Positions 1 to 30,239 are shown, numbered from the stretch's first letter. The stretch: DNA of 64,000 nucleotides from Lepidodermella squamata (GCA_047495785.1 JBLDXI010000007.1:930001-994000); one strand, 5' to 3'. A program made the numbers and translations. Notes: generated by a model not told the origin, from the sequence alone.

Positions 1-889
1 TAAAAGTAGAAGATTTTTTTCGACAGCAAAATAAATTTAAAGCATCATACCTGAAAAGTGTGAATAATCTTAAGTTTGGAATCGAGGAAATAAACCGCTT
101 GATCCGATTCACCACCGGACTGAAAAAACATTTGCATTGGCAGTCGCAAGATATCAAAGCTCTATACAGATGAGGTACAAATCAAAGCGAAAAGCAGCAT
201 CCCAGTCAACAAACTTTTAAGCTGCCGATGGGTAGTTTCACAAGCCAGTAGTTTGAATCGGAATCCTCCTGAAAAGGGAAGACAATATCATCGTAGTCTA
301 TATCGGGCTCCAAGATTTCGGGGATAGCGTCAGGTACAGCTCTCAGAAATTCGTTCAAGCCGACATCTGAGTCTCGCAAGAGTTGGTAATCGTTTATAGG
401 GTCGATTAGCCTAGCTCGGCCAGTATCTCCAGCACGAATATCGGGAACGTAAATTAGCACAGAGCCTCTACCGAACGCCATGTCCAAAGACAGCGTCCGA
501 AACATTCGCTTCGTTTTCAAATCATTCCGAAATCGAATTAAATTAGCACTGTCCCTCAAAAATGACTTGCACGCATCGGCATCAAATTCCATCTGCAACA
601 GACCTTCCCAGAAGAAGTCTCTCTCAATGAAATTCCTCCACCTATAAAAATAATAACTTGCCAAAAGCTGCAATTTAATAAGACGTGTGACGATTTACTT
701 TTTACAAACTAGAGAGCAGCGCAGAAAAATGTCCCGATTTCTTAGGCACAGAAAAATCTTCCTGGTGACCTCAGGCGGTAGAGAAAACAGAAAATCGGTC
801 GGTTCTTCGACATGGGAGCGGCTTATCTTCGCCTGCGATGATTCTTGTTCGCTTTCAACATGATGATTATTACGTTTTTGAGGCGGCAT
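1..889 (-). CDS. F-box/ankyrin family gene A (5' part; continues beyond window start)
   Basis: Exon 1 (ORF 695-889) has F-box 'FLFSLPPEVTRKIFLCLRNRDIFLRCSLVCKK', then a GT-AG intron. Exon 2 (~210-641) 'WRNFIERDFFWEGLL...WLVKLPIG' and exon 3 (~50-160) are homologous to the other copies. Confidence 0.85.
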
Positions 890-1271
890 AATTCAATGAT
901 GCTCAAAATTCTAGGAGAAAGGCATTATTTGACGAAATTATAATTGAGCCAGATCACGAAGTATTCTTCATTGGAAAGCTCAGTGTTTTTCAACAAATTC
1001 ATCATCAAAAATCGAAATTTACTAAAAAAACCAGGTGAAACATCAGACAGGAAAATGGAAAGAAGAGGGAACATGATTCAATTTTGTAAAGGAATAAAAA
1101 TGAAGAAAATTATTTTTGGCGCCAAAAGAGCGAAGAGCTCGTTTCGATGCAAAAAAAATCTGTAATTTTATGATAAGAATACATCGCTACAAAATTTGGC
1201 AATGAATTACAGTGCAAACATTAACAAAACAATGGGTATGTGATGCGTTAAAAAAAAGAATAAAGATCTAT

Positions 1272-3500
1272 TCAAAATTTGGAATTATGTCTCGAAATCT
1301 TTTTCGATTTCTTATTCAACAAATGAGCGAGTTCGCTAAACGGGTCGTCCAGCTCAGCGTAATCAAGAGCCGTGTATCCGTCCGAATCTTTCAAATTCTT
1401 ATTCGCACCGTGCCTCAACAAAATTTCAACGGTTTTCAAATCCTTTCTTTTAACAGCCGAAATTAAGGCGGTCGTCATCGATCCGTCCTGGCGTATGTAA
1501 CGCATATTCGGATCGAGATCAGCCTCGAAAAGCAGTTCCAGTCGACCGCGATTAGGCGCATAATCAATAACACTTCTGCCTTGGTTATTGATGCGGGCAA
1601 AATCAGCTCCATGATCAATCAACGCCCGCAAAGGGCCCTTGGTTTCATGAGTTATAGCTCGCATCAACAGGGTTTTGCCACGACTGTCGCACTCGTTTAT
1701 ATCAGCACCATACGCCACCAGGACTGAAACTACTCCTTTTCGAAATATAGGTCCTTGACGGAAAAGAGCGGTGTAAAGATAAGACCGGCCTTCAGGGGTG
1801 TAACCATTCGGGTCAACGCCTCGTTTCATGAAAGTTTTCACGACATTTCTCAGTCCGTTTTGCAACGCGTATATGAAGTAACTCAGGTCAAAAGGAGCGC
1901 CATTCTGCAACAGGATTTCGATGATTTGCCGATTATCACGGCGAATGGCGTGCATCATTGGGCCCTCGTAGTGATGGTACGCCTTTGGATCGTCACAACG
2001 TTCGTCGTCTATTAGCTTCTCAACTTCACTGCCTCGCAGCAGATCGGGATCTTGTTCAAAAACCGCTTTGATTTGCTCGGTGTCCTCTTCCCAGATACTT
2101 AGGCCTAATTCCATGATCTCAAAAAAAAACAAAGAAAATTGAAAATAAAAAATTTGAAATGCAAAAATATTGAAGTTGCGAGACGCATAAAAACGCTACC
2201 CTCAAAAAATGAAGAGTATACGGCAATTTTCCCAGATAGCCCAGCCGGACACTAGAAAAGCACCTTATGAATTTTGAAATCGAAATCTTTCAAGGGTTTA
2301 CAAGATAGATGTGAATTTAACGTGAAGCAATGCGAAAGGCTACTTTCCCTCACTTATTTTTAGGGGAGATTAATTTTTTTTACTCATAGAAGACAAAATC
2401 AATATAAGGTATAAGGGGTCAAATCTTTGCACCCAGTTCTTACCAGTTTGTTCGCTTTAAACAAGCTCGGGAATACTGCACGGATTTCGAGACCCCAAAG
2501 CTCGGCATTCGACGCTAAATATCTGGCACCGGCAGGGTAATCGTCCACCGTAACGATTTTCTGCGTAGGCCCAAAATTAGCTGCCAATGGGAACTGTAAA
2601 ATTAGAAAGAAATTGACATTTCAGGAGAGCGGCAAACATTCAGTAACGACACCTGAACAGTTCGGATGATTTTTAGCTCGGAATCCAGAAAATGAACAGA
2701 TCGATCAGTGTCCTCTGCCCAGTCAACATAAATTTGTATCGGAATCCGCAGGAAGTCAAAAGCCTAAAAATAAGCTGTTAATAATCTGACAAAGATGACC
2801 AACTTTAAATCTAGCCAACCGGTAGGCTGCCAACCGGCAGTTTTAAAAGCCAGCAGCAGCAAGACCATTCGTCTTCCTCGAACGAAGTCGGAAATTTATA
2901 GAAATTACAATTAGTTTCCATGATTTTCGGAATAGCAACCGGAACAGCATTCAAAAACTCATCCAGGCGAACTTTTGACTCCCGCATCAGTTCACAATCA
3001 ATGTCAGGGTCGACCCTCCGCGGTGGAGCTGTATGGCCAGCCCGAGTATCGGGCACGTAAATTGGCGCAGCGTACTTGTCCCGCATATCCATTTCAGTTA
3101 TAGTCCGAAAAATTTGCTTCGTTTTCAGGTCATAGCGGAAACGAGCTAGATTATTCTTCTCTCTCAAGAATAGCCTGCAGGCATCGGTATTAAATTCCCA
3201 GAGCAACAGACCCTCCCAAAAACAGTCACTCTCAATAAAATTTCTCCATCTATAGATTTAAAGCAAGCTTGTAATAGACTGAAATTTAGTTGAATAAGCA
3301 AAATTTCACTTTTTACAAACCAGAGAGCAGCGGAGGAAAATGTCTCGAGTTCTCAGGCGCAGTAAAATCGCCCTTGTGACTTCAGGCGGCAGAGAAAAGA
3401 AAAAATCGAATGGTTCTTCTTCTCCTGCTGAGCGGCTTTTCTTTGGTAGCGATAGATCTTTTTCGATTTTCTCAGCATTTTTGCGCTTTTTCGGCAACAT
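1272..3500 (-). CDS. F-box/ankyrin family gene B (5 exons)
   Basis: F-box exon 3306-3500; middle exons ~2815-3250, ~2650-2765, ~2443-2595 ('VDDYPAGARYLASN..FPSL'); ankyrin exon 1272-~2117 (GADIN..G.TLL, G.TALDYA). Confidence 0.9.
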
Positions 3501-3712
3501 ACGACAGTAATTTTCAAAATTCTAGTAAAAAAATCAAGTTTATTTGAGGAAATGATGAAATTCTTGTGTGTAAACACTCTTAAACAAGAATCAAAACCGA
3601 CAAAATCTTGAAGTGCAACAAATAATCAAGTCAAACAGAGTAGAATGGAAAGACGGAAAAAGTTGAGTTTGGCCAATTTTAGAAAAATGAAAAATGTTAT
3701 TAACCGACTTTT

Positions 3713-5725
3713 TTATCGGCACCTATCCATAGCACTTTTCAAATGAGTCACAGCAAAACCGTTAGGAAACAATTTTTCCGCATGATCGAGGGCTGTTAGG
3801 CCACTAGAGTCCTTCAGCTTGGCATTAGCTGCGTAATCCAACAACAGCTTGACGGTTTTCGCGTCACCTTGCTTAGCTGCAGCTATCAATTTCGTACAAG
3901 TCGTCCCATCATCGTCGACATATCGAATGTTAGGGTCAAGACCGGCATGGAAAAGGTCGTCAAGTCGATTCAACGGCGCGAAATTCAGCACGTTTTGGCC
4001 CTTTTTATTTGCTTTTCTAAGATCAACCCTGTAGGATAGCAGCAGTTTAAGAGGCTCTTTGATGTTGAACGAAACAGCTTTCATCAACAACGTATTGCCG
4101 TCTTCATCGTAACACGAGTTGACGTCAGCACCGCCGGCTACAAGAGCTGAAATGGCCGACCTACGAAATCCGCACCAATTTTTCTGATCGAAAAGAGCCA
4201 TGTATAAATAAGGCTTGCCACCAGGAGTCGAGCCATTAGGATTAACGCCACGAGCTAGGAAGATTTTAACAACATCACCAAATCCCATTTCCAAGGCGTA
4301 GAGAAAGTAGCCGTGGTCCAGCGGAGCGCCGCGTTGAATCATAGTTTCGACGATGGGTCGGCTATTTCTCGCCAGGGCGTGAATCATTGGGCCATGCCGG
4401 TGCGAGTAATATTCCGGGAATTTAGAGTGGCAATCCCTGTTGATAGGTTCAACTTCGGACGAGCGTAGTAAATCAGGGTCTTGGGCGAAAATTTCGCTGA
4501 TATTTGGCTTCGAAAGGCAGCAAATGGCTTTGCAAAGATCCATTCGCTAAAAAGAAATCAACTACTCTTCATGACTCGAATATATAGCCAAAAATGCATC
4601 ATCTAGTGATTCCAATTAATTTCCCGGAATTATGTTGATTCATCTCTCATTAGCGACCGAATTTTAGAAAAATTACTTACCAATTTATTAATTTTGTATG
4701 AACTCGGAAACACCGCTCGAATTGTCAACCAGCAAATTTCGGCATTCGAAGCAAGAAATCGCGTTCCAGACGGGTAATCGGTGACATTGATCAAAGCTTG
4801 ATCATTTTGAACTGTTCCGTCGTAATGAGCATTAACAAGAGGGAACTATTCGAGAAATTGTAATGCTGAGAAGTATTTATATTGAAAGCTATTTCATACT
4901 TCAAAAGACTGAATAATGTTCAAATTCGCGTCCAGAAAGTGAATAGATCGATCTGGTTTAGTAGCAGATGTCGAAAACATTTGCAACGGAATCTTCAAGT
5001 AATCGAACGCCTGAAAAAAACATATTTCCATATAATTCTTTAAATTGTCATAAGAGCCGGGTAAACCTCTCTGCTTCTGATCGGCAACTTAAGCAGCCAA
5101 CATTTGAAGCGATCATTTTCATGACTGGTGATAAGTCTACAATTTTTATCCGGATTCATAATATCTGGTAAAGCTATCGGCACAGCTTTCAGAAATTCGG
5201 CCAATGAAACTTTCGCAGGCCGAGCATATTTATGCTTGTCCTTCTCAGGGACAACCATAGGCGGTTTCGTTTCACTTGGATGATCGACAGGAACGTAAAT
5301 AGAAATCGTATCTTTACTTTCGTCACGTGGCAGATTGAGAAAATTGGTTCGGAAAATTGGTTTGGTTTTCAGGTCGTATTGAAATCGATGAAGGGCTCCT
5401 TTATCGCGCAAAAATAGCCTGCATCTATCGGCCGGAAATTCTCGCTGAATGAGACCCTCCCAAAAGAAGTCACTTTCGAGAAATTGTTTCCACCTATATC
5501 AAAAAATTAGTAAAGAATCGCCAAAAGATAAATTGCCTACTGTTTGGAAACTAGTGCGCAGCGTAGAAATAAGTCTCGATTTCTCAGGTAGAGGAAAATT
5601 TGCCTAGTTATATCAGTCGGTAACGAGAATAACAGCTCGTTCGTGATTTGTTCGCAATTTCGAGATTTAACAGGCGGCGCTTCATCCGCGATTGGATCGA
5701 CATTTTTTCGTTTGCGAGGTGGCAT
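3713..5725 (-). CDS. F-box/ankyrin family gene C
   Basis: ATG 5725 (MPPRKRK), F-box 'LFSLPTDITRQIFLYLRNRDLFLRCALVSKQ', middle exons ~5050-5490, ~4900-5010, ~4680-4845, ankyrin ORF 3713-4543. Confidence 0.9.
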
Positions 5726-6700: not shown

Positions 6701-9700
6701 CTAATAGAAATCATGACCAGCCTTCTTATACATAGCTTGCCGCTTTTCATCACAACAATACAAATGCTCCACTGTAAGACCATCCTTGCTGACTATATTG
6801 ACATCCGCACCCCTCGCCAGCAGAATTTTCAGCGGCTCAACCCGCGGAAAATTGTTAGATCTCATCAGCAGCGTATAACCATCCTCGTCCACTTCGTTTA
6901 TATCAGCCCCAGCATCTATCAACGCATTGGCAGAAGCAGTGCGATATGGCTGGCCTTTCATCTGACCAAACAGGGCCCCTTCCAGCAGAGACTTACCACA
7001 AGGCATTTTCGCATTAGGCTCCCCGCCGTTAGACAGGTACAATTTCACAGCGTCGACTAAGCCGAATTTGACTGCTAGTGACGCATGGCTTGAGTCGATT
7101 TTTGCGCCGTGGCCCAACAACGCTTCAATCACGGCTTTATTGTTGAGACGGACAGCATGTGTTATCGGACCATCATCGGGCCATATGTGGTAGGGTTGTA
7201 TCATCATCACGAAATCGTTGTCCTCGGTGTTGTACTGCACAGACTCAGACTCGTTTCTCCGAACTAGATCAGGGTTTTCTCGCAGCATCTCAAGGACACC
7301 AGCCACGTCATCGCCGCAGATGTACTGGTTTAGTAGAAAGCGCTAAGAGTACATGAATTATATATGCCGCATTCATTCATTTTTCAAATATTCTCCCGAA
7401 ATCAGTTTAATCTGCCGTTATAACTAGTCAAATTCCAATACTGAAAATCGTGAAGTTCAAAAGCTCGGGCTAGTATTCGAAAATATTAGAAATTTTGCTT
7501 CTCAATCTAAAAATCTGATTAAAGCTTATTAACGTAAAAAATACTCGCAGAAGGGATTACAAACTCAACAACAAGAGACGCAACAAAAATAAAAAAATTT
7601 AATAGTCAAGAAATTACAAATGCCACGAGAATAAAAATCGACAATAATTTTGAATAATCGAGAAAAATTTGGTGCAACCGGGTAAAATACCGAAAATTAC
7701 CGAACCATTTGGAATAGGGTTAAGGTGGATTCACTAATGTGCGACAGGTACGACAAGTGTCGTACTGTCGCAGCTCTGTCGCATCAAATCCGCGGACGAC
7801 AGCCGAGGGATAGTCACAGTCGTATGCGCACAAAACAATGACACGCGCGGGCGCTGAGACAGTGTCGCGCGCGGCTGATTTTTATATGAAAGGAAACCAA
7901 ATTTGCAAAAAACTTGTCCAATTAAGTTTTTAACCAGAAAAATCGTTATTTTCGACATCAGTTACCCTATTTCCGTGTATTTTCATCGAAATTTGATAAT
8001 TTTAATTATTTTCACCTAGCACGGCACCACCTCGCGGATTATTGAGGGCGCTAACAACTTTTTTATTTAAATTTATTAAGGAAGAAATTCGTAGTCATTT
8101 GATAAAGAATTGTTTCAGTTTTAATTTGGTATAAAAGCCGCCATTGTTTTCGAAATTAGCAAAAAGACATTTTAGTGCGCGCGGCCACCGTTTTGTTAAA
8201 AATTTTGATGTGGTGTTTCGCGCCTTAGAGTAATGGTGCGTTGTCTATTTCTCCAGGTTTCGCGCACAAGTCCACTGTTATACTTCGATTGCGCGCTTGA
8301 AGTGGACCGAACTAGGACGTTGTTTTACCTGCTGTCGGACGATTCTAAGCTGTCGTGTCGCACACGCGAAATTCCACCAAAATCGCGCGTGCGATGCGAC
8401 AGGCCAGGTCCATGCGACAAAATCCTTTCTTAGAGTGCGCGCGCCCTAGTCGAATCTTGTCGCACGCGCACATTGTTCTCTGACTAGCGTTTATGAACAC
8501 TCGGCGCGACTGTCGTACGAAACGCTGATGCGACGGTACGACGCGCGACAACGTCGGATAGTATATGAACAACGATGCGATTTTCGCACCCGACAGTGCG
8601 ACGGTCGTATGCGAAATATTCGTATCCGAAAATTCGCACATTAGTGAATGCACCTTTATGTCGGACAGTTTACATTTTTTTGAGTGAAATCGCCCGTAGG
8701 AGATGCTCCCCGTATTTCGAATTTAAAATCAAAATAATATTTTGGCATAAATTTGCAAAACTAGAATATGGGACACGCGGCATTTGACTGCGGCTATTTA
8801 TATCCCTCTACTAAAATCATGATAACCACATAATTCCAGGAAACGCACTTGTTCGTTCATTTTCAAAAGACTCGGAAAGACGAAGCGGATTCTCCAGCCT
8901 TTCAAATGGCAACTCCAAGCCAGAAATTTCACTCCAACAGGATATCTATTTGTCGACAAAAAGGCGTCGCGGACTTGATTTGACAACATGGCTTCACCTA
9001 AATCCAAACAGGAAATCTAAGAAAAATTATTTCGATTTTCGAGTGATTATTCGATTGGAATTACCTCCACCTGGTGAATTACTTCAAAATTTTCATCTAG
9101 CATGTAAATAATGCGATCACAGCCCCACATTGTAACGAATAACTGAAGAGGCATGCGAAGACTGTCGAAAGCCTGAAAAAATTAGTAATTAATTACAATT
9201 ACTTGCCGAATGTTCGACCTACCTCGGGGCACGGAAGACTCATGATAATAAAACGATCGCTAAAATCGAATTTGACCTTTTTGCGCAATTTCTCTTCAAA
9301 TTTAAGCTGAGGATAGTTTTTCGAAAGAAAATCTATGCCTTCTTTGATTTCGCGCAATTGGGCGGTGGAACTTATATTTATTTGATTTGCCTCATCAATC
9401 TCGAACTGTTGGTTGGCCCGGAAAAACTCACTCGACTTCAACGCAGATCTCAGCTGAGAAAGCGCAATTTCAGATCGCAAAAATTGCTCGCTTCTCTCAC
9501 CCGGGAATTCACGAGCAACCAATCCATGCCAGAAGACATTGCTATTGAGAAAATCGTTCCATCTAAAAAACAAAAATTTTAGTAAGCATGTATATGAGAG
9601 TTAGCCAAGTATTACTTTTTGCAAACCAGCGTGAAAGTCCGGAAAATATCCCTGTTTCGAAAGTAAAAGAATATGACCTTTCTAACCTCCGACGGTAACG

Positions 9701-9800
9701 CGAAAATTAAATCGAACGGAGGTGGCTCGACAACGGATGATGACTTTGCCGTCGGAAAATCAATGCAGCCAACTTCACACTTTCGTTTACGAGGCCCCAT
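6701..9800 (-). CDS. F-box/ankyrin family gene D (last intron expanded to ~1.5 kb)
   Basis: ATG 9800 (MGPRKRK), F-box exon to ~9615, exon ~9220-9562, exon 4 'YPVGVKFLAW..FVFPSLLKMNEQ' ending ~8848, ankyrin exon from acceptor at 7343 to stop 6701. Confidence 0.8.
7723..8655. mobile_element. Non-autonomous PIF/Harbinger-type DNA transposon (MITE), 933 bp
   Basis: 22-bp TIRs AGGTG(G/C)ATTCACTAATGTGCGA at 7723-7744 and 8634-8655 (1 mismatch), TTA on both sides (7720-7722, 8656-8658), CpG-rich subterminal repeats, no transposase ORF. Confidence 0.85.
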
Positions 9801-10138: not shown

Positions 10139-11823
10139 TTATCCAGATATAATTCTCATAACGCTCACCGGTCGAGATGGTCTCGGCTTATCGGCTTGAT
10201 GGTCAACAATACCATGACCTGCCTTTTGGAAAATAGCCCTACGGTCCTTGCGCTGAATGGGACACTGCAGTACCGATTGACCTCGACTATTAACTATATT
10301 AACATCAGCACCGTTCGCCAGCAGAATTTTAAGTGGCTCCGCCCGCTTAAAATCAACAGCTTTCATGAGAAGAGTTTCGCCGTACCTGTCCTTTACATTG
10401 ACATCAGCCCCAGCGGCTATCAAAGCTGTAACAGGCGGCATAGAAAAAGGTACCCCTTTCACCAGTCCGAACAAGGCGCCGTGGAGGAACGAATATCCAC
10501 ACGGCATTTTCACATTAGGATCCCCGCCCTTCGATAGGTAAATTTCCAAAGCGTCGAAAAATCCTAACCTGACAGCTAGAGATACGTGACTCAAGTCGAG
10601 TTTAGCGCCGTGATTCATCAACGCGTCAAACATGGCTTTGTTATTCCACTGAATGGAATGGGCCAACGGGCTGTCATCGGGCCAAATATGGCGGTATCTG
10701 TTCATGTTTACGGCCGAACTACAGTAGTCAAGGTACTCGGCTTCACCCCTCCGAACCAGGTCTGGGTTTTCACCCAAAATCGCCAGCACTCCAGCCAAAT
10801 TATTGACGCAAATGCGATTGATCAGTTCATATCGCTGAAATTGACAAAAATGATGAAAAAATAATGATAGAATTTTAGGAACGAACCTTTTCATTAATTC
10901 TCAAGAGGTTTGGGAACACGAAGCGAAATTTAAGGTCGTCCAACGAGCACTTACAAGCTAGAAATTTGACTGCAGCAGGGTAGTCATTGCTCCACAAAAA
11001 GTTGGCACGGCCTCGATACGACGAGGACGTAAAACGGGGAACCTACGTAAAAATTAGATAAATTGACGCGATTGATCGATAGAAGTCTACCTTACTCGAT
11101 GAATCACTTTAAAATCGCCATCAAGCAAGTAAACATCAGAGTTGTAAGTATTATTTAATAGCTGAAGAGGGATTCCGAGGCTGTGGAAAACCTGAAGAAA
11201 TGTTTAAATAATTATTAACAAATTGAGAAATCGGGTCACCTCAGGGCACGAAAAATTCATCAATATGAAGCTATCAGATTTGAAGAAGACCCGCCTTCGC
11301 ATTTTCTCCTCAGCTTTCCATTGAGGATAGGTTTTTGAGATAAAACCTAAACATTCCTCGACATCGCGCGATTTGTAAGCTCCAGTTATATCGGTGTAAT
11401 TTTCCCGCTTGGCATCGAGAATTTTGTTTGCCCGACAGAACTCATTCGACTTCAACGCAGCCTTTAGTTGTGGAATGGCAGTTTCAGAATGCAAAAAAAA
11501 TTGCCTGCCTTTTTCACCCGGGAATTCCCGCAAAATTAGCGTTTGCCAGAAAACGTCGCCATCAAGAAATTCATTCCACCTTAAAAAAATGAGAAGAGAA
11601 TTGATAGATTTCACATCTGAATGACGAAAAGCGATAACTTTTTGCAAACCAATGAGCAAACCAGGAAGATATCTCTGTTTCGAAGGTACAGAAATAGCGT
11701 TCTTCTAACGTCCGGCGGCAACTCGAAAATAAAATCGAAAGGAGCCGACTCGGTGACGGATGATGACTTTGCCGGCGAAAGATCACAGTCGTTAATATTG
11801 GATTTTCGTTTACGGGGTCCCAT
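10139..11823 (-). CDS. F-box/ankyrin family gene E
   Basis: ATG 11823 (MGPRKRK), F-box 'FIFELPPDVRRTLFLYLRNRDIFLVCSLVCKK', middle exons, ankyrin ORF 10139-10894; closest paralogue of gene D. Confidence 0.88.
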
Positions 11824-12924
11824 TTCAGCACATTGGTACATGTCCAAAGTAAGGAGGCACTTGAATTACAAATAGGAAAAAAACAAGTAATTCAATTCGC
11901 TGAAGAACGGTAAAATTCATCGAAATAGCATAGAAAATTATTCGACATTACTGATTTGAAACTAGTGACAAAAGTGATGAAAAAAGCCCAATGAGCCCAG
12001 TGGTCATCATTGGCCATATTTTTATTGCTATAGCTATACGGCCTATGCAATCTGATTAATCTGAGTAATCTGGCTGGTATTAAGTCATTTTAACTTGGTC
12101 GCTCGGCCAAGACATCAATAAATTCATTCATACCTAAATGCGATTTGTCATTTTACTCGTGGCGAAAACAAGTGATAGTATAGTTGTTATTTTGCTTCGT
12201 CGTGTTCAATCAAACACTGACTGCTTATAAATACGAGGCAAAAGTCTTGACGAGACAGGTCAGGGAAATCAAAATTATGCTGTAAGTAATAACGAGCGGC
12301 TTTCTCAGTCTCTGTGCGATATAGCTGCCGGCAAATCGACCGGAAATCACACAAACAATTGACATAATTACACATTTTCGGGATTCTCAAGGCAGCTTTT
12401 GGCATTCGGGAATAACTGGTCGATTTGATTTTCAGTTGTTACTCCAATATTGATTTTCATCACTTTTGTCACTAGTTTCAAATCAGTAATGTCGAATAAT
12501 TTTCTATGCTATTTCGATGAATTTTACAGTTCTTCAGCGAATTGAATTACTTGTTTTTTTCCTATTTGTAATTCAAGTGCCTCCTTACTTTGGACATGTA
12601 CCAATGTGCTGAAATGGGACCCCGTAAACGAAAATCCAATATTAACGACTGTGATCTTTCGCCGGCAAAGTCATCATCCGTCACCGAGTCGGCTCCTTTC
12701 GATTTTATTTTCGAGTTGCCGCCGGACGTTAGAAGAACGCTATTTCTGTACCTTCGAAACAGAGATATCTTCCTGGTTTGCTCATTGGTTTGCAAAAAGT
12801 TATCGCTTTTCGTCATTCAGATGTGAAATCTATCAATTCTCTTCTCATTTTTTTAAGGTGGAATGAATTTCTTGATGGCGACGTTTTCTGGCAAACGCTA
12901 ATTTTGCGGGAATTCCCGGGTGAA
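11513..12924. repeat. Near-perfect inverted duplication: 471-bp arms (11513-11983 / 12454-12924), 470-bp spacer
   Basis: Identical ORF translations on opposite strands (11611-11847 - vs 12590-12826 +); arm ends located by reverse-complement comparison; only one mismatch noticed. Confidence 0.95.
12614..12924 (+). pseudogene. Inverted partial copy of gene E (F-box exon plus start of exon 2)
   Basis: Same F-box sequence as gene E on the + strand, cut off at 'REFPGE'. Confidence 0.85.
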
Positions 12925-12991
12925 TTTCAGTTGGCGCCGTATTTCAGTAGACGTATTCAAAAGCTTTCACGTGGGAGCTAAACAGTTGACT

Positions 12992-14647: not shown

Positions 14648-14760
14648 TCTAGAATAAAATCGAAAAGCTTTATATTACAAATTTATCATTCAGAAAATCG
14701 TTAATATTGAAACTCAAAACAGCAACAAAAGTATAAATATAGGTTGAAAGAAACGGGTAG

Positions 14761-17299: not shown

Positions 17300-18290
17300 T
17301 TTCTATAATCCTGTATTTCTTCCCATTTCTTTTCCCGAATGACTTGCATCGTTATAATATTCTTCGATTCGCTGAAAAGGCCGAAAATAGCGGGCTGTAT
17401 GATTGGCGTCGACAACGAAACAATCAAGTTCTCGCAGGTGCTTTGGAGGTAGCTGCTTGTTTGTCAACTTCTCACTTCTTACCTCCAAGACCTGAATGAT
17501 GACCAACTATCAAATCTTACATTTTTGCCCCGCTTTTCTTGACTTTTGCTTTTAAAATCGAGATTTCTAGAAAAGCGGTGAGCCCTAAAAGACGAGAACG
17601 CTTTGTCAAATACTCTCCAACTAGCAGAACTTTCTGTCTGAACAAGGTCGCCCTGTCGATTTTCTGTGAGATCGAACTTTTTCGGTTGTGAAGGCTTCAT
17701 TTGAAGCGGCGATTCGAGCGGCGGGCTCTAAAGATCCGTCGACAACAATTCAACAAACAGTACAGGCGGTACCAGACGACGTGGTCGACAATTACTGGGC
17801 ACAGGGCTTGCTTGGAGATCACGCTGCCGAACCGATGCTCAACGGTCTGGTTTTTCAAATCGGCATTCACTGAACTCTCAGAGCGGCCGCTTAACACTTC
17901 GCTCTCCGACGTCAAACCATTGCTTTTTCAGTTGCAAGTTCTTGAAAATGGCTCCAGGATAAGTTGGCCGTGACTATTTCCACCACAGATTTCAACTACG
18001 GGACTTCCTGAATGACGGTGATAAAGTCGATCAGAGCGAAGGATATCGGTTCCAAACGTTCAAGCGAAGCTTCAGGGGTGGGTTAAAACTACAATTTCTA
18101 ACGATTTCGCTCAACAATCGCGGCAAAACCAACACACAAAATGTCCTAAGATTAACATTCAAACCCAAGGTCACTGAAGTATACGCAGCGGTAGACGGCT
18201 CGCCGCGTTGCTTGTCTCCACTAACGTTTTCCGAGTGCCTCAGCAAAATGATGCTTTTTATCTCGAGTTCATCGAAAACAGGTTTCGAGC
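17300..18290 (+). mobile_element. Decayed Crypton-like tyrosine-recombinase (DUF3504/KIAA1958-like) element fragment
   Basis: Collinear interrupted motifs: 'YDWRRQRN', 'KSGEP*KTRTL..QNFL.EQG', 'YWAQGLLGDH..PMLNGLVFQIGIH*TLRAAA*H', 'GGLK', 'KVTEVY..SPRC', 'DAFYL', matching my recollection of the DUF3504 consensus order; many stops/frameshifts. Confidence 0.7.
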
Positions 18291-19870: not shown

Positions 19871-21200
19871 CTATGAGATGGCACGACTTTGATCATTATT
19901 CAGTTTTCCTAGGGCGACAACAAGAGATCCGTCGAAAACTTGTTCGGCAATGTAATCTAGGACAGAGAGGCCTTTCCAGTCTCGCAAATGTACTTTGGTA
20001 CCGTATTTCAGCAGAATCTGGATCGCCTTAAAATCCTGATGTTTCACGGCTTCAATCAAAGCAGTAGAATAGCGACCTTCCTCATTAAAATAACAAAGAT
20101 CAAGTCCAGTCTCGAACAACAAGGGCGGACGCTTTGCCGGTGAAAAATTCAGGACACTCTCGCCTCGCTTGTTAACCATGGCTAAATGGGGCTTACCGGC
20201 CAAGAGCAATTTCAACGGCTCAACATACTGATGCTGGATGGCTTTCATTGCTAGAGTATTACCATCTTCATCGCTCTCATTTACGTCAGCCCCAGCAGCA
20301 ATCAGAGGCTTGACGGCGCCCTTTCGACGACCAGCTCCAAGTGGGTTGAAAAGCGCGTAATGTAAGTAGGATTCTCCCTGCGGTGTGACCCCATTCGGAG
20401 CAATGCCTCCTCGGTCCAAATATAACTTAACAGTCTGATTGAGCCCATATGAAATACGTCAAGTCCAAAGCAACGCCATGGCTAATCAGAAGCTCCAAAA
20501 TTGATCGACGATTCCGGCGCATCGCGTGAAACATCGGCCCGTCACCCACGTCCATGGGAAGAGCACATTTTAGTCCAAGCAGTTTGCTTCTCAACGGGAG
20601 CTCCTTTCAGCAAATAAGGATCCAACTTGAAAATCGCAGAAATCCTGTCTTTTTTGCCGCGAATAATTTGCCTAAGCGCTGAAATTAGATCAAACTACTC
20701 ATTTATTGAAATGATCAAGGCTTCGAAATTACCAGCTTTTTAATTCGAAATAGACTTGGCAAAACTAATCAAATTTCGAGACAGCCAATCTCACTGGTTG
20801 CGGCGATAAAACGAACACCCGCAGGATAGTCCTCAATTTCAAGGATCAGTACTTCGTTTTTCGACGAGACAAAACCAAATAAAGGAAACTGAAATAATTG
20901 TTTTAGCAAATGAAGTGAGCGAATTTCATAACACAAACCTCAAAAGTATGAATAATTTGGAGCTCCGAATTCAAAAAATGAATAGCCCGATCGTCATGTA
21001 TGGCCGACCGAGCTCTGAATTCGAAAGGTATTCGCAGGTGATCCAAAGCCTAAATTAATAAAAAAGATTATTCAAAATTCCAGAATGTCTGAATATTAAT
21101 TATCGAACTTGAGTGACGCCGATAGGTATTTTAATCATCCAGAAATCGCCGGCCGTAATCACATTTTCGAAGTCTTCAGTAGGGTCAGCGTGGGTTCCCC
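19871..21200 (-). pseudogene. F-box/ankyrin family gene H pseudogene (F-box lost)
   Basis: End of exon 2 ('FWMIKIPIGVTQV'), exons 3-4 and a frameshifted ankyrin exon remain; the 5' part is replaced by the Crypton-like repeat. Closest to gene F. Confidence 0.8.
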
Positions 21201-21603
21201 AATGATTTACATCGTTATATAATATTCTTCGATTCGCTGAAAATGCCGAAAATAGCGGGCTGTACGATTGGCGTCGACAACGAAACAATCAAGTTCTCGC
21301 AGGTGCTTTGGAGGTAGCCGCTTGTTTGTCAACTTCTCACTTCTCACCTCCAAGACATGAATGATGACCAGCTATCAAATAGTACATTTTTGTCCCGATA
21401 CATCGCTTTTCTTGATTTTTGCTTTTAAAATCGAGATTTTTAGAAAAGCGGTGAGCCCTACAAGACGAGAACGCTTTGTCAAATACTCTCCAACTAGCAG
21501 AACTTTCTGTCTGAACAAGGTCACCCTGTCGATTTTCTGTGAGAACAAACGCGAGAACAAACGCGAGAACAAACGAGAACAACGTGTAAAGGCTTCACTT
21601 GAT
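21197..21603 (+). mobile_element. Second copy of the Crypton-like fragment
   Basis: Aligns by eye (roughly 90%) to ~17335-17704; reads 'KSGEPYKTRTL', 'VKASLDA'; contains a short tandem (GAGAACAAACGC) repeat at 21541-21583. Confidence 0.75.
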
Positions 21604-21730
21604 GCATTTAAATTTAAATTCGAATTAAATATATCGTTAATTAAATCGTCGGGTTTAACACACAACATTGACGAAATTTTAAAACAACAACAAAGCTTGA
21701 ATAAAAAACTGGAGAAAAACAAGCGATAAG

Positions 21731-23576
21731 TCAATTACGAAAGCGGCCGGGGAATTCAAGTAGTTCAATAATGTCATCGCATTTTCCAATTTTCTTGGCG
21801 TGGTCCAAAGCAGTTAGGCCGGCCGAGTCGACAATATCGAGCCTGGCCCTGAATTTGATCATAGCCTCAACGTATTTTAAATCTCGCCGTTTCACAGCTG
21901 CTATCAAAGCAGTGCATTTAGAGCTGTCAGTGTCAACGTAAGGTAAATTCGGATCCAAACCAGCTTCCAGTAAAATATTCAGTCGCTTAGCAGGTACGAA
22001 ATTCAAAACAGTTTCGCCCTTGTTATTTCTCCGGGTCAAATCAGCGCCGGCTGAGATCAGCATTTTCAGAGGTTCGACCAGGTGATATTTTACCGCTTCC
22101 ATAGCCAGGGTATTTCCATCTATATCCGTCCTATTAGGACTCGCCCCGGCCGCTAGTAAAGCCGCAATCGATCCGCGGCTGAACCCGCTCCCAAATTTTT
22201 GCGAAAAAAGAGCGACATGTAAATAGGAGCGGCCATTAGGGGCCAATCCGTTTGGGCCGAATCCACGTTCCAAAAATATTTTGACCGTTTCCCCAAAACC
22301 CTCCGAAATCGCGTATATCAAGTATTGTGGGTCGAGAACAGCACCATTTTTCAGCAATATCTCAAGGATAGATTTGATATTTCGACGGATGGCGTGTCGG
22401 ATGGGTCCATCGCCCCAGTAATAGTTGCCACCCATCGCGAAACGTTCCGTCAAAATGTTGCCCTTTTCAACAGGCAATCCGCGCAAAAGTTCAGGGTCCG
22501 CTTTGAAAATCGATTGAATTTCTTTCGATTTTCGTAAACAAATAAGTTTACAAAGTTGAAGGCGCTATAAGATAACATCATTATAAGTTATCAAAACGAA
22601 TCAGACGAACCTACCAGTTGATTTATTTTCATCAAGCTAGGGAAAACAAGGCGGATATCTAGCCGGCGAATTTCGCTGTTAGAAGCGATAAATCTAACAC
22701 CAGTCGGGTATTCGTCAACTTGCTTCAACAAAAAGTCATGGTCATCAAGGTCATCGCCAAAAATCGGAAACTAAAAATAATCAAAATATATATGATAGAT
22801 TGTCGAATCTTTGCATCCCAACCTCAATTGTGTAAATAATTTCAAAACTACTGCTCAACAGGTAAATAGCTCGGTGCTCCTCTTTAGCTGCTTCGGCTCG
22901 AATCTCGATTGGCACTTTCAACAAGTCCAGAGCCTAGATTCAGTTTCATTGAAAAATTTTCCGATAATTACTAATAAATTATCATACTTTTAAACAGCCG
23001 ACAGGAAATTTTAATAGCCAAGCTTTGCGAAACATACCGGTCACCGAGCGATCGAAATCACGATCAAAACTCAATTCATTAGTCACAGAGGCCGGAATCG
23101 ATTGCAAAAATTCAACGAGGCCAGATTTCCCAGAGCGATCGGTAGCATTAACTTTCAGGCAATTTGAGTCCTTCCTTGCTTTGTCGAAGTATTCGACGCG
23201 AAATATCTGTTTTTTCTTCAGTTGTTCTTTCAACTCTTGAAGAGCCCCTTCAAGGTGTAGAAACGACCGACTTCGCTCATCAGGAAATTCTCGAAGGATT
23301 AGACCCTCCCAGAAACAATCGCTTTCTAGAAATTCTTTCCACCTTCAGAATAAAAATCAAATTGAAAATGATTGAAAATACAGCCAAAGCTTACTTTTTG
23401 GAAACTAGAATGCAGTGGAGGAAAATGTCTCGATTTCTCAGGTACAAGAAAATAGCTCGGCGGATTTCAACAGGCAGAGTGAATATAAAATCAACTGAGT
23501 CCAGGCTCGATTCACGTAGTTTCTTCGACTCATCATCAACAACTGGATCGGCGTTTTTCCTCTTACGAGGCGGCAT
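21731..23576 (-). CDS. F-box/ankyrin family gene I
   Basis: ATG 23576 (MPPRKRK), F-box exon, middle exons, ankyrin ORF 21731-22486; very close paralogue of gene G. Confidence 0.9.
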
Positions 23577-24140
23577 GACTAACAATTAGAACACACAACA
23601 CACTAAATCGTAAATAAACACATTACGTATAAGATTTTTCTGTGAGCTTTCCAAATTTCATCTCCAGGATAAAACCGTGATAAATTTGGCGAGCCGAAAT
23701 TCGCAAAAAGAACCAGAAATACGTGCGAAATTCTTCGCTGAAAAACGCTTTCTACCTTGAAACTATACTCATGAATCTAGTCCGAATGTGAGGCATCGGT
23801 CAAATTTTTCAAAAGTTCGCCGATCAACCAAGTGTTACTTTAAAAAATTTCCCATTTCGATAAACTGTCTAAAATTGAAGAACGAACCAATGTAAATGAG
23901 TTTCTTGAAAGAATCAAGCAAGTAACTCTGGTATCATAGCACAAGGTAAATATTCGAGTTTGTAAATAAACAGATATGCAACAGCAACAACAACGTTTCA
24001 TCATTCCAAAATAGCATTCAATAACTTGAGCAATGCGCCTTTGTATGAATTTACAAGAACTTTTCATACAGGTGTGAATAAAGCAGAAAATTGGTTAACA
24101 AAGTCACAAATTTGGTATTCATCCAATTCAGTTTTGTCAT

Positions 24141-25828
24141 TCACTCATCGATATCCATCTGAGTAGGATCATCGATACCTTCGATGCGAATGTAGTTGAG
24201 ATGATGCCCAGCTTTTTCGAAAACAACACGACGTTTAGGATGAATCCAACGATTCAACACCGTTCGACCCGAATTATCCAGCCGTTTGACGTCAGCCCCT
24301 TTTGAAAGCAGGTAACGCAAAGGCTTGACTCGCGAGAATAAGACTGATTTCATCAATAAAGTGCATCCATCCTCGTCACATTCGTTAATATCAGCCCCAG
24401 CTTTCAAAAGAGCGGCGATACTCGATTTCCGGAACGGTTTTTCTTTCAACTGGGTGAAAAGCGCCTCGTGTAGTAACGATTTTCCATTCGATTTTTTCGC
24501 ATTGGGGTCACCGCCCTGAGCCAGGTAAACCTTGACAACGTTGCATAGGTTCAGTCGAAGAGCGAAAAAAACGTGGCTCGGATCAAGTTTAGATCCATGG
24601 CTGATGAGCAGTTCGAGAATTTGCTTATCATCACGTCGAATCGCGTGGTACATCGGGCCGTCGCGAGGCCAATTTCTCTCAGGATGAGTCATGTTATGAA
24701 AATCCTCTTCCAAATAGCTGCATGTTTCAACATCCAACCCGCGCAGAAGATCAGGATCTTGCTGGAAAATTTCATTGATCTTCGCCAACCTTTTGGCGCA
24801 GATGTGCTTCGACAGTTCAAAGCGCTGGAGATGAGAAAAAATTGATCGAAATAAAGATTTCTTTCAAATTAAGTACCAATTTATTGATTTTAAGGAGGCT
24901 TGGGAGGACAAATCGAATCGATAGGCCTTCGATACCACCCGTGTAGGCGATATATCTGACATCAGGTGGGTAGTTTTCAACGTCGAGAGGGGCGAACATA
25001 TTCTCCCAATCCCGTACAAGAGTCCTGTTTGAGAACTGAAGCAGAGAAATTAAAAGCATTAGGCTTCATCGAGACCTACTTCGGTAATGAAAACTGTTTC
25101 GAATTTCGAGTTCAGCAAGTAAACTTCTCGTTTCTCATCGCACCAGCTGTCGTGCACCAACTGGAAAGGTAGCCGCAAACAATTGATCACCTTAAAATGA
25201 ATTCTAACATGCATTCAGGTAGTTTGCGAATTCGTTCCAACAAACGTCGAGTAAATAATTAGGAATTCTCAAAATCCAGTAGTAACGCCCAAGTCCAAAT
25301 GGGTCAGAATTCACACGAGTTAAATCGTACTCGAAGGTCTCGATTGCTGGAAAATAATGCGACTCCGTGCAGAACAATTTGTTGAGAGTAGGGGGAGGCA
25401 GTGAAGCGTTCCCTACTGTAATGATTTGTTGAGACAGCATGTCCCAGAATAATTCACGAAAAAGTAAGCCAGCTTTTAGCAGCCTTCTCAGCGTTGAGAG
25501 GGCGTTTTCTTTACTACGAAGGAAGGCCTGGCATCTTTCGAAGGGAAATTCACGCAGGATCAAACCTTCCCAAAAACAGTCGCTTTCAAGGTAATCGTTC
25601 CACCTTATAAGAAAGATAAATCCGTAAGATGAAAAACGGTGTTGAGTTTCATTACTTTTTGCACACTGAAGAACATCGTTGAAAAATATCCCGGTTTCGA
25701 AGATACAAAAATATCGATCTTCTAATTTCAGGCGGCAATTCGAATAAAAGATCAAAAGGTTGAGATGGATCGAAATTTTCAAGTTTAGCTGGATCTTCGG
25801 TCGAACGAGAGACCTTGGACGATTTCAT
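24141..25828 (-). CDS. F-box/ankyrin family gene J
   Basis: F-box 'LLFELPPEIRRSIFLYLRNRDIFQRCSSVCKK', exon 4 'VENYPPDVRYIAY..FVLPSL', ankyrin ORF 24141-24788. Confidence 0.88.
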
Positions 25829-26751
25829 TGCAAAAAAGCGTATTCCTAAATTGAAAAATTGAACCACTATAGCATAGGTATTACGTTATTCTCGCCAGAA
25901 TTGTATTATAAACTAGGCGAAATACAATACATATAAAAATTTGGAAGTCATCTTCTTCCGTCTCCCGATCTTGCATCAGCTTTATTTCACTCAAAATATG
26001 GATATTTTATTTGTCTTCAGGCTTCATCGTCGAGAGTGATTGTAGGATTCTGGTAAAATCGAAAGGCCTATAAATTTCTCTCAGTTAAGTTGCCTCTGTC
26101 CTGGTCAATTCGCTCATTTTGCACGGACAATTTCGAAAATAGAGCATCCATAGATAGCCCATTCGCAACAGCGGCACCATCTATTCACTTCTATGGCTTT
26201 CTTGGACAGAAAACTCGATAGAATTGACAGAAATGATAGAAGCCAATTCGATTAAATGAATTCAAGCATTTGACAAGGCGGGTTCCAGGAAGTCCTGTTG
26301 GAATTTTTCCGTAATTTTTCTCCACCTCAGGAGCTTTTCAATCTTCAATTCCGTGACTGACTTCCTGAAGAGAAATTTTCCCAAAAAGATGGCTTCGACT
26401 CAAAATGGTACACAATTCGGAAAATTGAAATAATCGACAAAATTGAATCCGCTTCCGGCTGTCGAGAGATAAACCTCTCCGAAACAATAGAATTTATTTT
26501 CACGCCTTCCGCGATCCTTTTTCGACATGCTTCTCAATTTGAGATCAATTTTCCTAAAAATTGAAATGACATATTTTATTTTAAAGGCATGCGCTTGAGC
26601 AATTTTATTCCTCCGATCGTCGTTGAGCTTGTTGTAAAATTCACAGGTTATGGTTGTTGAAAGATGAATATTTTCGTTGTAAATACGTATATCATATATG
26701 AAGCATTAAAAACAACAACAATAAAAACAGTCATATTATCGTTCGGCATTC

Positions 26752-28452
26752 TCACTTTTCAGCGGCTTCTCGCAACAATTTGCGAATTTTCGAACTTTCC
26801 ACGTCCTTAGCGTAGTCCATAGCCGTTTTCCTGTCAGAATCTTTCGCATTAACATCGACTCCGTGTTTCAGGAGCAAGTTAACCAGGCCTGGTCGATCAG
26901 TTTTAACGGCTTCAATCAACGCCGTTGTCTTTTTCTTGCGGGTAAGATACATCGTTTCATTCGGATCAGCGCCGGCGGTTAAAAGCAGCTGAACCCGCGA
27001 GTCCTGGGGCAAAATGTCGCGGTCAAACTCGTTGTCCTCCTTAAAATACTGCAAGGCGAAGAAAAGCGCGTTCTGCTTGAAACAAGTCGCGCGCTTCACA
27101 TCTGCCTTGTGTTTTCGAATCATGTGACGAACGAGGGAATAATGACCCGCCCCACACGCGTTCATAAGGGGCGTAAAACCGTACTGGTCGCCGCGGTTGA
27201 TGTCATATCCATATTTCATGAGACAATCGATGAGAAATTCTTGATATTCAGCCGGGCCACGTGACCCGGTCGCACGAAGCCAAACAGCGTCCAAGATTTC
27301 AGAAATATCCGCGACAACACCGGGCTGGAGAAAATAGTTCAGAGCGCGAAGGCTCCAGCGATCGAGAGCGTAATCAACGTCTTCCCAGGTGTATTCAATC
27401 CCGAATTTCCTGAGGATAGGCAATATATCACCTCGATCGTAGAAAATTGCGAATTCAACAGGGTGACTATCGAAGTCAGCGGCGCAGCGATTGGATCGGC
27501 CTTGTGTAGCTAGTTCAGGTTGAGCCTTCAAAATCGCTTCCATTCCAGCCAAATTCGACGATTCCATGCATGCCAAAAGTTGATCAATCTGCAATAACAG
27601 ATTTAATGAAACTAGTCAGACCACCCTTTTATATCACTAACGGTATAAGTTTTTGGCCTCATAGCGGCTCGAAAGCCATCCTTTGAAGCCAAGTAGACTG
27701 TACTTCTAGGAAAGTCATCATAAACAGCTTTGCCCAAATCATTCGGCGACACGTTTACATTAGCCGTTTTCATAAAGTTCGAGTCAAGAAAGTAATGTTT
27801 GCCCGGCATTAAAACCAAGTTGAGCTTCAGGGAGTCCTAAATAAACAAAATTCATGAGAAATTGTTGCAATTAATCAAAGTTTAGTTCAACCGTGAAAAG
27901 AAAGCTTCTCAGCCGAATCAGCTTCCATTCGCTGAAATTCTTCCTTTTAGGATCAGCACAGACGATATCAGGATTTTTTAGTTCGCGAATCATAAGATAC
28001 CGCCGGAATTTGTCGAAAGTCGTATTTTGCGGGAGATTCATCGTGAATTGATTAGGCGTCTTCAGCAATTTCGTGAATGAAGAAAAGCTGGGTTCCGTTT
28101 GAAGCACAGCTTTCAATTCCTCAAGCTGACCGCTGCGAATGAAAGGCATCGCAATTTCAGGGCCGAATTCCCTGGCCAAAAATTCTTCCCAAAACGCGTT
28201 TCCATACAGGCATTGATGCCACCTAAAGAAAATTGAATTTCAAGGAAAAATCCACTTTAAGAGAGCTCACCTTTTACAAACCAGGGCGCAAGACTTAAAA
28301 ATTTGACCAGCGTCCAAATGGAGGAAAATTTTATTCAAAACTATCGATGGCAATTTTGATACAAAATCGATTTGTGGATCAATTTTAGCCCGTTTCATCG
28401 GAGGCTGGACCGCGTTTTCTGAAGCACATGGCGCAAGGGATTTTCTCGGCAT
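26752..28452 (-). CDS. F-box/ankyrin family gene K (divergent member)
   Basis: ATG 28452 (MPRK..KRAK), F-box 'FVSKLPSIVLNKIFLHL..IFKSCALVCKR', 'DDFPRSTVYLAS', ankyrin ORF 26752-27594. Confidence 0.87.
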
Positions 28453-28542
28453 GCTACAGTAAAAAAATCTAGGCAAAAACCAACGAAAATATTTCACAAA
28501 TTAAATTTTAATTTGAGGATATAGAGCAAGCAAATATTAAGA

Positions 28543-30239
28543 TCACGGATTGTTTTCAGTGTTCCCATTGAAAGCATTTCGCATGGAAGTAACCAGATTT
28601 GGGAAGTTATCAACGAATGTCGCTTTCGCCATGTCATACATATCACGGTAGACCTTAGCGCAGGGCTGCATCAGCAAGTCAATCGCATCGTCTTCTACAG
28701 CCGTAGTTCCGACAGTTTCGCCAGAATTTGCACCGGCCTGGAGTAATTCTTCCAACAACTCGCACGACTCTTCGTCATTGCACATTTTCCCGAGAACTGC
28801 GTCGAAAGCCGAACGGCCATCTCGACCGACCAAATTGACCTGGGCGTCGTGTTTCAGTAAGAATTTCACTTTTTCAATATCCCCAGTCTCGCAAATGTCC
28901 TTCAACACAGTTCCGCCACTTTCCATGACATGGTTCACATTCAAACCGTGTTCAACCAGGGTTTCAAGTAACTCCCACTGCTCGGATAATACATTTTCTC
29001 GATCCGAGTTATTTTCCGGTTCCCAAATGAGTAAATTCCACAGCTCATCAGCTTTTTCGTTGGGATCAACTCCGAGGTCCAGATAAGCATTAACAACGTT
29101 TAATTTGAAGTCCTTCGCGGCTGCAACCAGGTCACTAGCCGTGAAGGGTTCGCCGAATTTCGCGATTAATTTCAATATGTCGCCATTGTGTTCTTTCACG
29201 GCTCTTTTGAACAATGAGAAACGACTGCAGGGTCCATCTTTCCGGCCAATATTAGCGAAATCAGGCCTCAAAGTCAGTATATGTTCAATATCATCCATTC
29301 GATCTCCAACAACAGCGTTTTGCAGATCTTTCAACATTAAATGACTCTTTAAATAAAGAAATATAGACAAATTTCAAGGTGGAATTAGCAAAATTACCTG
29401 CTGCATGATTATCGCAGAGCATGGAAGTAATAATCGAAAGCACGGATATGTTTGATGACCAGCGATGAAAGACACGTTTTCAGGATAATTTTCGAGAGTA
29501 AAAACTCGATCGTTGATAGTTTTTATAATATTCAGATCGGCATCTAGGAGGTAATAATGACCGGAACGATAGAATTCTCGTTGATACGTGAATCCAAAAA
29601 TAGGCATTTTGAGATGTTCCTGAAAAAAATCATTCATATCAACTCAAATTATTTTTTATCCACGAATTTTACCGGAAATAAATATTCAGAAATATTCATG
29701 ATCCACGCAAATTGAAGGGTGGTTGAGTGATTGCGCGAGTAGACGTAGCGCTCATTGGTGAGTTGTTTCGATCGAACAGTGGCAATTAATTGATCGATAG
29801 AAATTTCGCCCTCAAGATCACAGCAAACTCCGCCGCTTCTGAAAAGGTCGGCGATTTTGATGGGCCGATAAACGTGCTCATTTTGAATAAGCTGACGTAA
29901 CTGGCTAATGGCGCCCTGTTCTCTGATGAATTTTCGGGCTCGATCGACGCCAAATTCGTGAATAACTAAAGCCTCCCAGAAAGCGTCAGTCGTTAAAAAT
30001 TGATTCCAGCTAAAGAAAAAACCGTATTTATCGATAACCTTGAATAATTTCAGGGTAGTTTACCTTCGAGAAACTAGTGTACAGGTTCCGAATATGTCGT
30101 CATTTCTCAGGTACAAGAAAATTTTGCCCACGAGAGATGAAGGGAGACAATGAGTGAAATCGACATTCTGCGCGGCATTGATCGAAGCATAGCTAGAAGA
30201 CTTCTGGCAGTTGTTTGATTTCTCACTTGGCGCAGCCAT
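28543..30239 (-). CDS. F-box/ankyrin family gene L (divergent member)
   Basis: ATG 30239; hand-translated F-box 'FTHCLPSSLVGKIFLYLRNDDIFGTCTLVSRR'; 'ENYPENVSFIA' exon (29374-29637); ankyrin ORF 28543-29370. Confidence 0.85.

Follow-up and report, generated by a model that had tools for sequence, protein, structure and literature searches.

F-box receptors decide what SCF (Skp1-Cul1-F-box) ligases destroy. In Caenorhabditis (fbxa, fbxb, fbxc) and in plants they form large, clustered and lineage-specific families that evolve by birth and death, each joining a conserved F-box to a variable C-terminus; to our knowledge large private F-box families, known from nematodes and plants, have hardly been described in other animal phyla. 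Here we analyse a tandem array of F-box genes that fills positions 1-30239 of a 64-kb stretch of DNA from Lepidodermella squamata (C7:930001-994000, hereafter the window; the genome assembly measures 121 Mb and lacks a COX1 gene). On its sequence the array is a family of F-box / FBA-like sandwich / ankyrin genes, a domain combination without detectable relatives elsewhere, and we consider it probable that each protein serves as a lineage-specific SCF substrate receptor within an array of ~44 old paralogues.

Several described systems share part of this design. FBXO2, FBXO6 and FBXO44 (Fbs1, Fbs2 and FBG3) have the same order of F-box, helical linker and beta-sandwich. A model of the family finds its closest structural matches in them (3wso_A with an expectation value, E, of 2.4e-6; VIA-align Z 6.0-7.7), and profiles show a weak colinear likeness. 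The array genes differ from them in having no Pfam FBA match, a smaller sandwich that lacks the C-terminal segment, appended ankyrin repeats, and dozens of tandem copies rather than a handful. Legionella AnkB and the ANK/PRANC proteins of poxviruses, Orientia and Wolbachia likewise combine a Skp1 handle with an ankyrin target arm, and AnkB shares the N-terminal position of the F-box. These are however intronless effectors of pathogens that have no middle sandwich, PRANC being C-terminal, whereas the array consists of spliced host genes. In the ASB proteins too, ankyrin repeats form the substrate module of a cullin-RING ligase receptor, but these proteins work through a SOCS box, Elongin BC and Cul5 where the array would use an F-box, Skp1 and Cul1, and they have the reverse domain order and no FBA-like domain. 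The Caenorhabditis and plant families resemble the array in size, in clustering and in their restriction to one lineage, as well as in the contrast between a conserved F-box and a C-terminus that varies. Their C-terminal domains are FTH/FBA2, Kelch or LRR, as against FBA-like plus ankyrin in the array, and unlike those families the array yielded no sign of positive selection and has old duplicates.

What is new here is the combination of an F-box, an FBA-like sandwich and ankyrin repeats, amplified to dozens of copies and without detectable relatives in ~15 billion public proteins. A literature search found no description of animal F-box/FBA/ankyrin arrays. If the FBA ancestry discussed below is true, the family would be a clear case of a lectin domain that lost its sugar site and became a scaffold, and the array offers a testable set of candidate receptors with which to study the purpose of such expansions.

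Array extent, exon plan and splicing

Five exon profiles, seeded by exons picked out by eye in a single gene, were scanned over C7:810001-994000. Together with repeat finding, the scans gave 12 paralogous units at window positions 1-30239, all on the minus strand: 10 are complete, one is cut by the window start and one is a pseudogene, and an inverted 5' fragment lies among them. The exon-profile scan found the F-box exon in 11 of the 12. The whole array comprises ~44 gene units at C7:834774-960239 (~125 kb), of which the window's 12 are the last, right-hand quarter; several fragments and stop-bearing exons were found further left. Spacing between units is operon-like, with a median of ~300 nt and a minimum of 61 nt. 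A first-pass annotation, made from the window alone, had described 12 co-oriented paralogues on one five-exon plan, with a pseudogene and a truncation among them. Number and orientation were recovered by the scans and the array grew to ~44 units; a pseudogene lies at 19871-21049, and the gene at 12992-14647 is truncated. The exon plan holds in most copies, except that exons 3 and 4 are a single exon in the last two genes (26752-28452 and 28543-30239) and that one paralogue has no F-box intron.

In the common plan exon 1 carries the basic N-terminus together with the opening two thirds of the F-box, and exon 2 completes the F-box with its last helix and adds a helical stretch and a hypervariable region; exon 3 has 37 codons, exon 4 has 47, and exon 5 carries the ankyrin repeats in ~260 codons. 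The F-box is split in nearly all copies by a phase-2 intron of 47-85 nt (median 53 nt). After exon 1, 38 of 43 copies have two bases and GT; before exon 2, 42 of 43 have AG and one base; and the intron is kept across paralogues with only 20-50% residue identity. An intronless array paralogue left of the window (L004:7035-7619) has lost the F-box intron and reads continuously through CKAVSRKWHEFIDSRYFWEGF (SRKWHEF), which confirms the junction between exons 1 and 2. Distant family members on other contigs are single open reading frames (ORFs) with the same order of parts.

Read evidence came from Logan contigs of two public runs, none of the listed runs being recorded as RNA; such contigs carry no strand, level or transcript ends. 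A contig of one run (X1) matches the gene at 3713-5725 up to base 5012 and then continues with 13 letters that equal 5069-5081 exactly. The stretch skipped is 5011-5066, allowing a two-base ambiguity; on the minus strand it is a GT..AG intron of phase 0 whose removal joins exon 2 to exon 3 in frame. Its precise loss suggests that X1 holds complementary DNA. Among the loose contig ends of X1 only that at 5012 is informative. Those at window 3004, 5350 and 5470 share AACTTAGACGGAAGTCA / GGCTAGAAAC in either orientation, which looks like adapter or chimera rather than biology, and many opposite-strand joints in X1 contigs have the appearance of library chimeras.

F-box, ankyrin repeats and predicted docking on Skp1

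The consensus of the array F-box is LPPEIRRKIFLYLRNRDIFLRCSLVCK|(K)W. The intronless paralogue L004:7035-7619 passes both Pfam PF12937 (29.3 bits, cut-off 24.3) and PF00646 (26.0 bits, cut-off 20.5) over the full length. Exon 1 alone (window 25652-25867) reaches 24.3 bits on the Pfam F-box, that is, the cut-off itself, and other family members, the intronless relatives elsewhere in the genome, score 30-52 bits. Judged by these scores the F-box is genuine.

The genome encodes a canonical intronless Skp1 (L039:1492-1977). A complex of this Skp1 with residues 31-140 of an array paralogue was predicted with an interaction score from aligned errors (ipSAE) of 0.85 in three of three runs, the best control reaching 0.40; in calibration 51 of 78 solved complexes attained the mark, as did 2 of 108 mismatched pairs. 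The runs share at least 85% of contacts, the predicted local distance difference test (pLDDT) of the partner is 70-72, and the predicted interface is the canonical one, between the C-terminal helices of Skp1 and the F-box. Because many Skp1-F-box complexes have been solved, the prediction points to a competent-looking F-box rather than to actual binding; on this model the array F-box would dock on Skp1.

Ank_2, Ank, Ank_4 and Ank_5 of Pfam matched four window exons at E 1e-8 to 1e-24, the best ankyrin values being 1e-17 to 1e-24. In the ankyrin exons Pfam found no SOCS box, and PRANC stayed below its cut-off (E 0.073; 13.9 bits against 25.8), the F-box being N-terminal. A single-ORF F-box/middle/ankyrin gene on another contig (L014:1787-3124 on C24) served as a full-length intronless relative. 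Its model (pLDDT 79.5) shows an F-box, a linker, a sandwich and two helices followed by ankyrin repeats, the helices of which lie above a pLDDT of 90. At the other end of the proteins, a basic cluster falls within the first 20 residues in 32 of 43 copies and a run of four basic residues (RKRK type) in 22 of 43.

In a receptor of this kind a short basic N-terminus (often MPPRKRK) would be followed by the F-box, a helical linker, the reduced FBA-like sandwich encoded by exons 2-4, and 4-7 ankyrin repeats encoded by exon 5. With the F-box docked on Skp1, the linker and beta-sandwich would act as a stiff stalk like that of FBXO2. Target choice would fall to the ankyrin arm, perhaps with the help of hypervariable exon-2 loops, each paralogue recognising a different protein, and the basic N-terminus may direct the receptor to the nucleus. 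The first-pass annotation had likewise proposed SCF substrate receptors, citing the F-box consensus and a basic N-terminal motif; the same consensus and the motif both reappear in the array at large, and the Pfam F-box, the Pfam ankyrin repeats and the Skp1 complex model support the proposal in silico. Several points speak against the receptor reading. The score of the Skp1 complex may reflect memory of solved Skp1-F-box structures. Transcription is witnessed by short contigs of one run, X1, whose RNA nature is otherwise guessed, and by one junction in one gene. Among the contigs of the public runs no molecule was seen that joins F-box and ankyrin exons.

The exon-2 profile finds relatives within the same genome, spread over at least 12 other contigs, and none among 1.84 billion representatives of ~15 billion proteins. 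A profile of 29 F-box+middle proteins found nothing among 5.8 billion clusters, and the ankyrin part matches only generic ankyrin proteins, including bacterial and metagenomic ones. As far as public data reach, for a phylum that is poorly sampled, the family is private to its lineage, and the lineage specificity that had been supposed from the window holds across the public protein libraries.

The middle domain and its likeness to FBA

The part between F-box and ankyrin repeats had been set down as an unknown domain. Pfam indeed recognises nothing in it, but structure searches and weak colinear profiles now suggest an identity: the middle domain is probably a reduced FBA-type beta-sandwich of FBA ancestry. 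It is not confined to the array. Exons 2, 3 and 4 are colinear with the middle part of an intronless F-box family on C11 (hhalign probability 97.5%, 79.6% and 95.8%), which indicates that the domain is shared and can exist without ankyrin repeats. That family has ~24 intronless tandem F-box+middle genes, none with ankyrin repeats, at C11:1331890-1358625 and 1533134-1573065 (L030-L034, L015); they end in acidic tails, several with Cys-rich motifs (CSSCCDC, PCCSGC).

An AlphaFold2 model of one C11 member (L015:1892-2803), built on an alignment of 29 natural ORFs (A3), reached a pLDDT of 77.8 and a predicted template modelling score of 0.74, and in it the F-box leads through three linker helices into a sandwich with ~7 strands. 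Foldseek against the PDB returned exactly four hits at E<=1e-3, all of them F-box/FBA proteins with Skp1: 3wso_A (prob 1.0), 2e31_A, 8zuh_A and 2e32_A, the proteins being Skp1-FBG3, Fbs1 and Fbs2. When the Foldseek hits were aligned with VIA-align, FBA entries held ranks 1-9 (Z 5.8-7.7), and the sugar-binding domain alone gave Z 6.2 with a root mean square deviation (rmsd) of 3.9 Å over 109 residues. VIA-align over 48,161 representative PDB chains, run without Foldseek, placed FBA at ranks 1 and 2 (Z 6.3 and 6.0, the latter with rmsd 3.9 over 110 residues). A shape search of the ESM Atlas ranked the F-box/FBA cluster first, with template modelling (TM) scores of 0.37-0.40.

Sequence profiles point weakly the same way. 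With the F-boxes removed, the middle-domain profile matched the true FBA domains of the same genome at hhalign P=1.9e-4 (probability 47%, 80 colinear columns), the template being shallow at 3 sequences. Taken singly against this 3-sequence FBA template, exons 2, 3 and 4 gave P 1e-3, 2e-3 and 7e-4 in colinear order. The family motif YP.GVR(Y/F)I aligns with the FBA stretch DYGRGVRKV.

A number of observations count against FBA ancestry. PF04300 (FBA) has no match in any family member even at E<=10, and the exon-2 profile, made from 38 peptides, found no FBA protein among the 1.84 billion representatives and chance matches only among PDB sequences. The fold was predicted for intronless relatives on other contigs and not for a window gene. 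In the search of 48,161 chains, unrelated sandwiches scored Z 5.3, only ~0.7 below FBA, and a Z of ~6 falls within the range that VIA-align states for common arrangements; TM-scores against FBA are below 0.5 in both Foldseek and the ESM Atlas. A lead to FBA from a language model (0.90) was not repeated with L014 (0.78, no family). Finally, the alignment stops before the C-terminal FBA segment, which reads GVDTQFWRGHYGAKFT / GVDTQFWRGHYG in the true FBA proteins of this genome. Past the alignment end a single strand (LWLPWPSQ / IRFVFPSL) is all that follows in the family, and the missing segment is the one that holds the sugar-contacting Tyr-Trp in Fbs1.

These observations leave some room for a middle region that is an unrelated small beta-sandwich, FBA-like by convergence or through a common arrangement, and a new spacer in F-box+ankyrin receptors. 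We regard this as possible but doubtful. It would account for the unmatched Pfam FBA model, the Z of ~6, the lack of an FBA signal in the Atlas features of L014, and the prediction of only ~7 strands, the sugar-binding domain of Fbs1 being a ten-stranded sandwich. It fits poorly with FBA coming first in four differently built searches (language model, Foldseek, VIA-align on 48,161 chains and ESM Atlas shape), with three exon profiles that match the genome's own FBA in colinear order, with the F-box, helical linker and sandwich order of FBXO2/6/44, and with the shared GVR motif. Even on FBA ancestry, glycan binding by the middle domain is unlikely, given the absent Pfam FBA match, the smaller sandwich, the missing C-terminal segment, the added ankyrin repeats and the dozens of copies.

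Genuine F-box/FBA genes also occur in the genome, three of them in tandem at C74:298564-302528 (L035) with ~160 bits on PF04300, and the canonical family thus coexists with the reduced one.

Age, selection and alternative accounts of the array

Substitutions were estimated by Nei-Gojobori counts of non-synonymous (dN) and synonymous (dS) changes on profile-aligned codons, exon by exon, and pooled over nine independent pairs. Pooled dN/dS, a pairwise count insensitive to positive selection at single sites, was lowest in the F-box (0.11-0.19), with 0.23 in the helical linker, 0.22-0.24 in exons 3 and 4, 0.23 in the ankyrin exon, 0.35-0.38 in the variable part of exon 2 and 0.38 in the N-terminus. 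The closest pairs have dS 0.73-1.3 and dN/dS 0.19-0.33; saturation would shrink dS, so that the true dN/dS would be lower if anything. The lowest dS between any duplicates, 0.73, separates the genes at 14761-16608 and 21731-23576 (dN/dS 0.27). Averaged over all copies, identity amounts to 45-50% for the F-box; for the variable part of exon 2, where large indels occur, the figure is 14%.

The first-pass annotation had contrasted a well-conserved F-box with a strongly divergent exon 2, and these identities agree with it. It had further read the array as holding recent duplicates and as diversifying against pathogen or selfish-element proteins. With old duplicates and purifying selection everywhere, neither statement is supported: the closest pair stands at dS 0.73, the only identical sequence is a 471-nt inverted repeat that may be an assembly artefact, and pooled dN/dS is 0.11-0.38 in every region.

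The order of the genes records how the array grew. For 19 of 40 genes the nearest paralogue lies at most 2 positions away, against 3.5 expected by shuffling, and a second set of nearest paralogues lies ~20 positions apart, a pairing that reads as an old block duplication. Within the window a two-gene block at 12992-16608 was copied to 19871-23576 with a spacing of ~6970. One copy then decayed: at 19871-21049 the ankyrin exon is frameshifted and exons 1-2 are missing. Local tandem duplication and at least one multi-gene block duplication built the array, and some copies decayed afterwards.

Expanded F-box families of nematodes and plants have been proposed to have roles against foreign proteins, and the array could by analogy be an intracellular immune or anti-selfish-element repertoire, under positive selection, that marks foreign proteins for degradation inside the nucleus. 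Large size, clustering, restriction to one lineage, gain and loss of genes, the lack of orthologues elsewhere and a hypervariable exon-2 region are what such a repertoire might show. We nevertheless hold this account unlikely. Pooled dN/dS is nowhere near or above 1, its maximum being 0.38, and dS of 0.73-1.3 between the closest duplicates indicates slow turnover. A broader version, which we rate as rather improbable, would take the array and the ~24 C11 genes together as a nuclear-targeted SCF receptor repertoire for intracellular surveillance against viruses or mobile elements. An ancestral FBA domain that bound glycans, stripped of its sugar loop and given an ankyrin arm, would here have been re-used for the recognition of proteins, in a phylum (probably Gastrotricha) without described innate immune receptors of this kind.

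A mostly decaying remnant, with little or no transcription and no current function, is very improbable. It would predict the pseudogene, the truncated copy and the inverted fragment in the window, as well as the fragments and stop-bearing exons further left and the thin RNA evidence. Against it, exons 1, 2, 4 and 5 are open in at least 34 units, splice sites are kept and one contig is spliced, and dN/dS of 0.2-0.33 over a dS of ~1 requires long-term purifying selection. Intracellular bacteria and giant viruses often encode F-box+ankyrin effectors, and acquisition of the genes from such a source with later amplification would explain the N-terminal F-box and ankyrin order shared with AnkB and the generic best ankyrin matches, bacterial and metagenomic ones included, but we dismiss it as scarcely credible on account of spliceosomal introns at kept positions and phases in nearly all copies, a GC content in line with that of the rest of the window, the likeness of the middle domain to animal-type FBA, relatives with the same middle domain on at least 12 other contigs, and the lack of any close bacterial or viral match in the protein-library searches.

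The individual units of the window are given here from stop to ATG, on the minus strand unless stated. The leftmost gene runs across the window start and is included with its 5' part only (1-889; exon 3 at 51-161, exon 2 at 224-640 and exon 1 with its ATG at 701-889); its exon 4 and ankyrin exon are just left of the window. It is followed by a complete five-exon gene at 1272-3500 with N-terminus MLPKKRKN (ankyrin exon 5 at ~1275-2117, exon 4 at 2444-2593, exon 3 at 2653-2763, exon 2 at 2829-3249 and exon 1 at 3311-3500), and by another at 3713-5725 with N-terminus MPPRKRKN, the gene with the one splice junction matched by the X1 contig. The gene at 6701-9800 has a short ankyrin exon (6701-7336) and exon 4 at 8849-8989; the 1.5-kb gap between the two is either a long intron or a disruption.

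A complete five-exon gene with a short ankyrin exon occupies 10139-11841, and its 5' end, exon 1 plus the beginning of exon 2, recurs as an inverted copy on the plus strand at 12454-12969. This fragment adjoins the 3' end of the gene at 12992-14647, which is truncated there: its ankyrin exon covers only profile positions 1-201 of 261. The arms of the inverted repeat, 11513-11983 and 12454-12924, are 471 nt long, 100% complementary and separated by a 470-nt spacer; the palindrome is either a very recent rearrangement or an artefact of long-read assembly.

The two closest paralogues, at 14761-16608 and 21731-23576, are both complete five-exon genes, the second being part of the two-gene block duplication. 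In the pseudogene between them (19871-21049) the ankyrin exon is spread over three frames, exons 4 and 3 are kept, and exons 2 and 1 are gone. A 325-nt segment at 17353-17677 re-occurs at 21218-21550, where exons 1-2 of the pseudogene would be. We rejected it as a mobile element, since the genome contains no copy beyond these two (93-96% identity), both in the window; ORFs of the inter-gene gaps, checked alongside, had no Pfam match. The gene at 24141-25828 is complete with five exons, has a short ankyrin exon and lacks the RKRK motif at its N-terminus. The last two genes are divergent, with the fused exons 3 and 4 at ~27640-27850 in 26752-28452 and in the ORF 29374-29637 in 28543-30239.

The gene at 28543-30239, the first of the array in reading direction, lies 168 nt downstream of the end of an XK-related (scramblase-type) single-exon gene on the same strand (30407-31969, minus). 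The metagenome contig with the one relative found for this XK-related gene (48% identity) has no array genes beside it. Two genes, at 34461-36061 (minus) and 37680-39098 (plus), end in a SOCS box (Pfam E 1.8e-8 and 2.3e-9) and show no further domain that is recognised, so that the F-box array has cullin-ligase receptors of a second kind as direct neighbours. At 40606-42567 and 48894-50357 (plus) are near-identical long ORFs, each with a Ser/Thr-rich mucin-like stretch between Cys-rich modules; the pair, ~8.3 kb apart, has the look of a recent duplication. A single-exon RNase T2 gene with a signal-peptide-like start (Pfam E 7.8e-18) is found at 57262-58155 on the minus strand.

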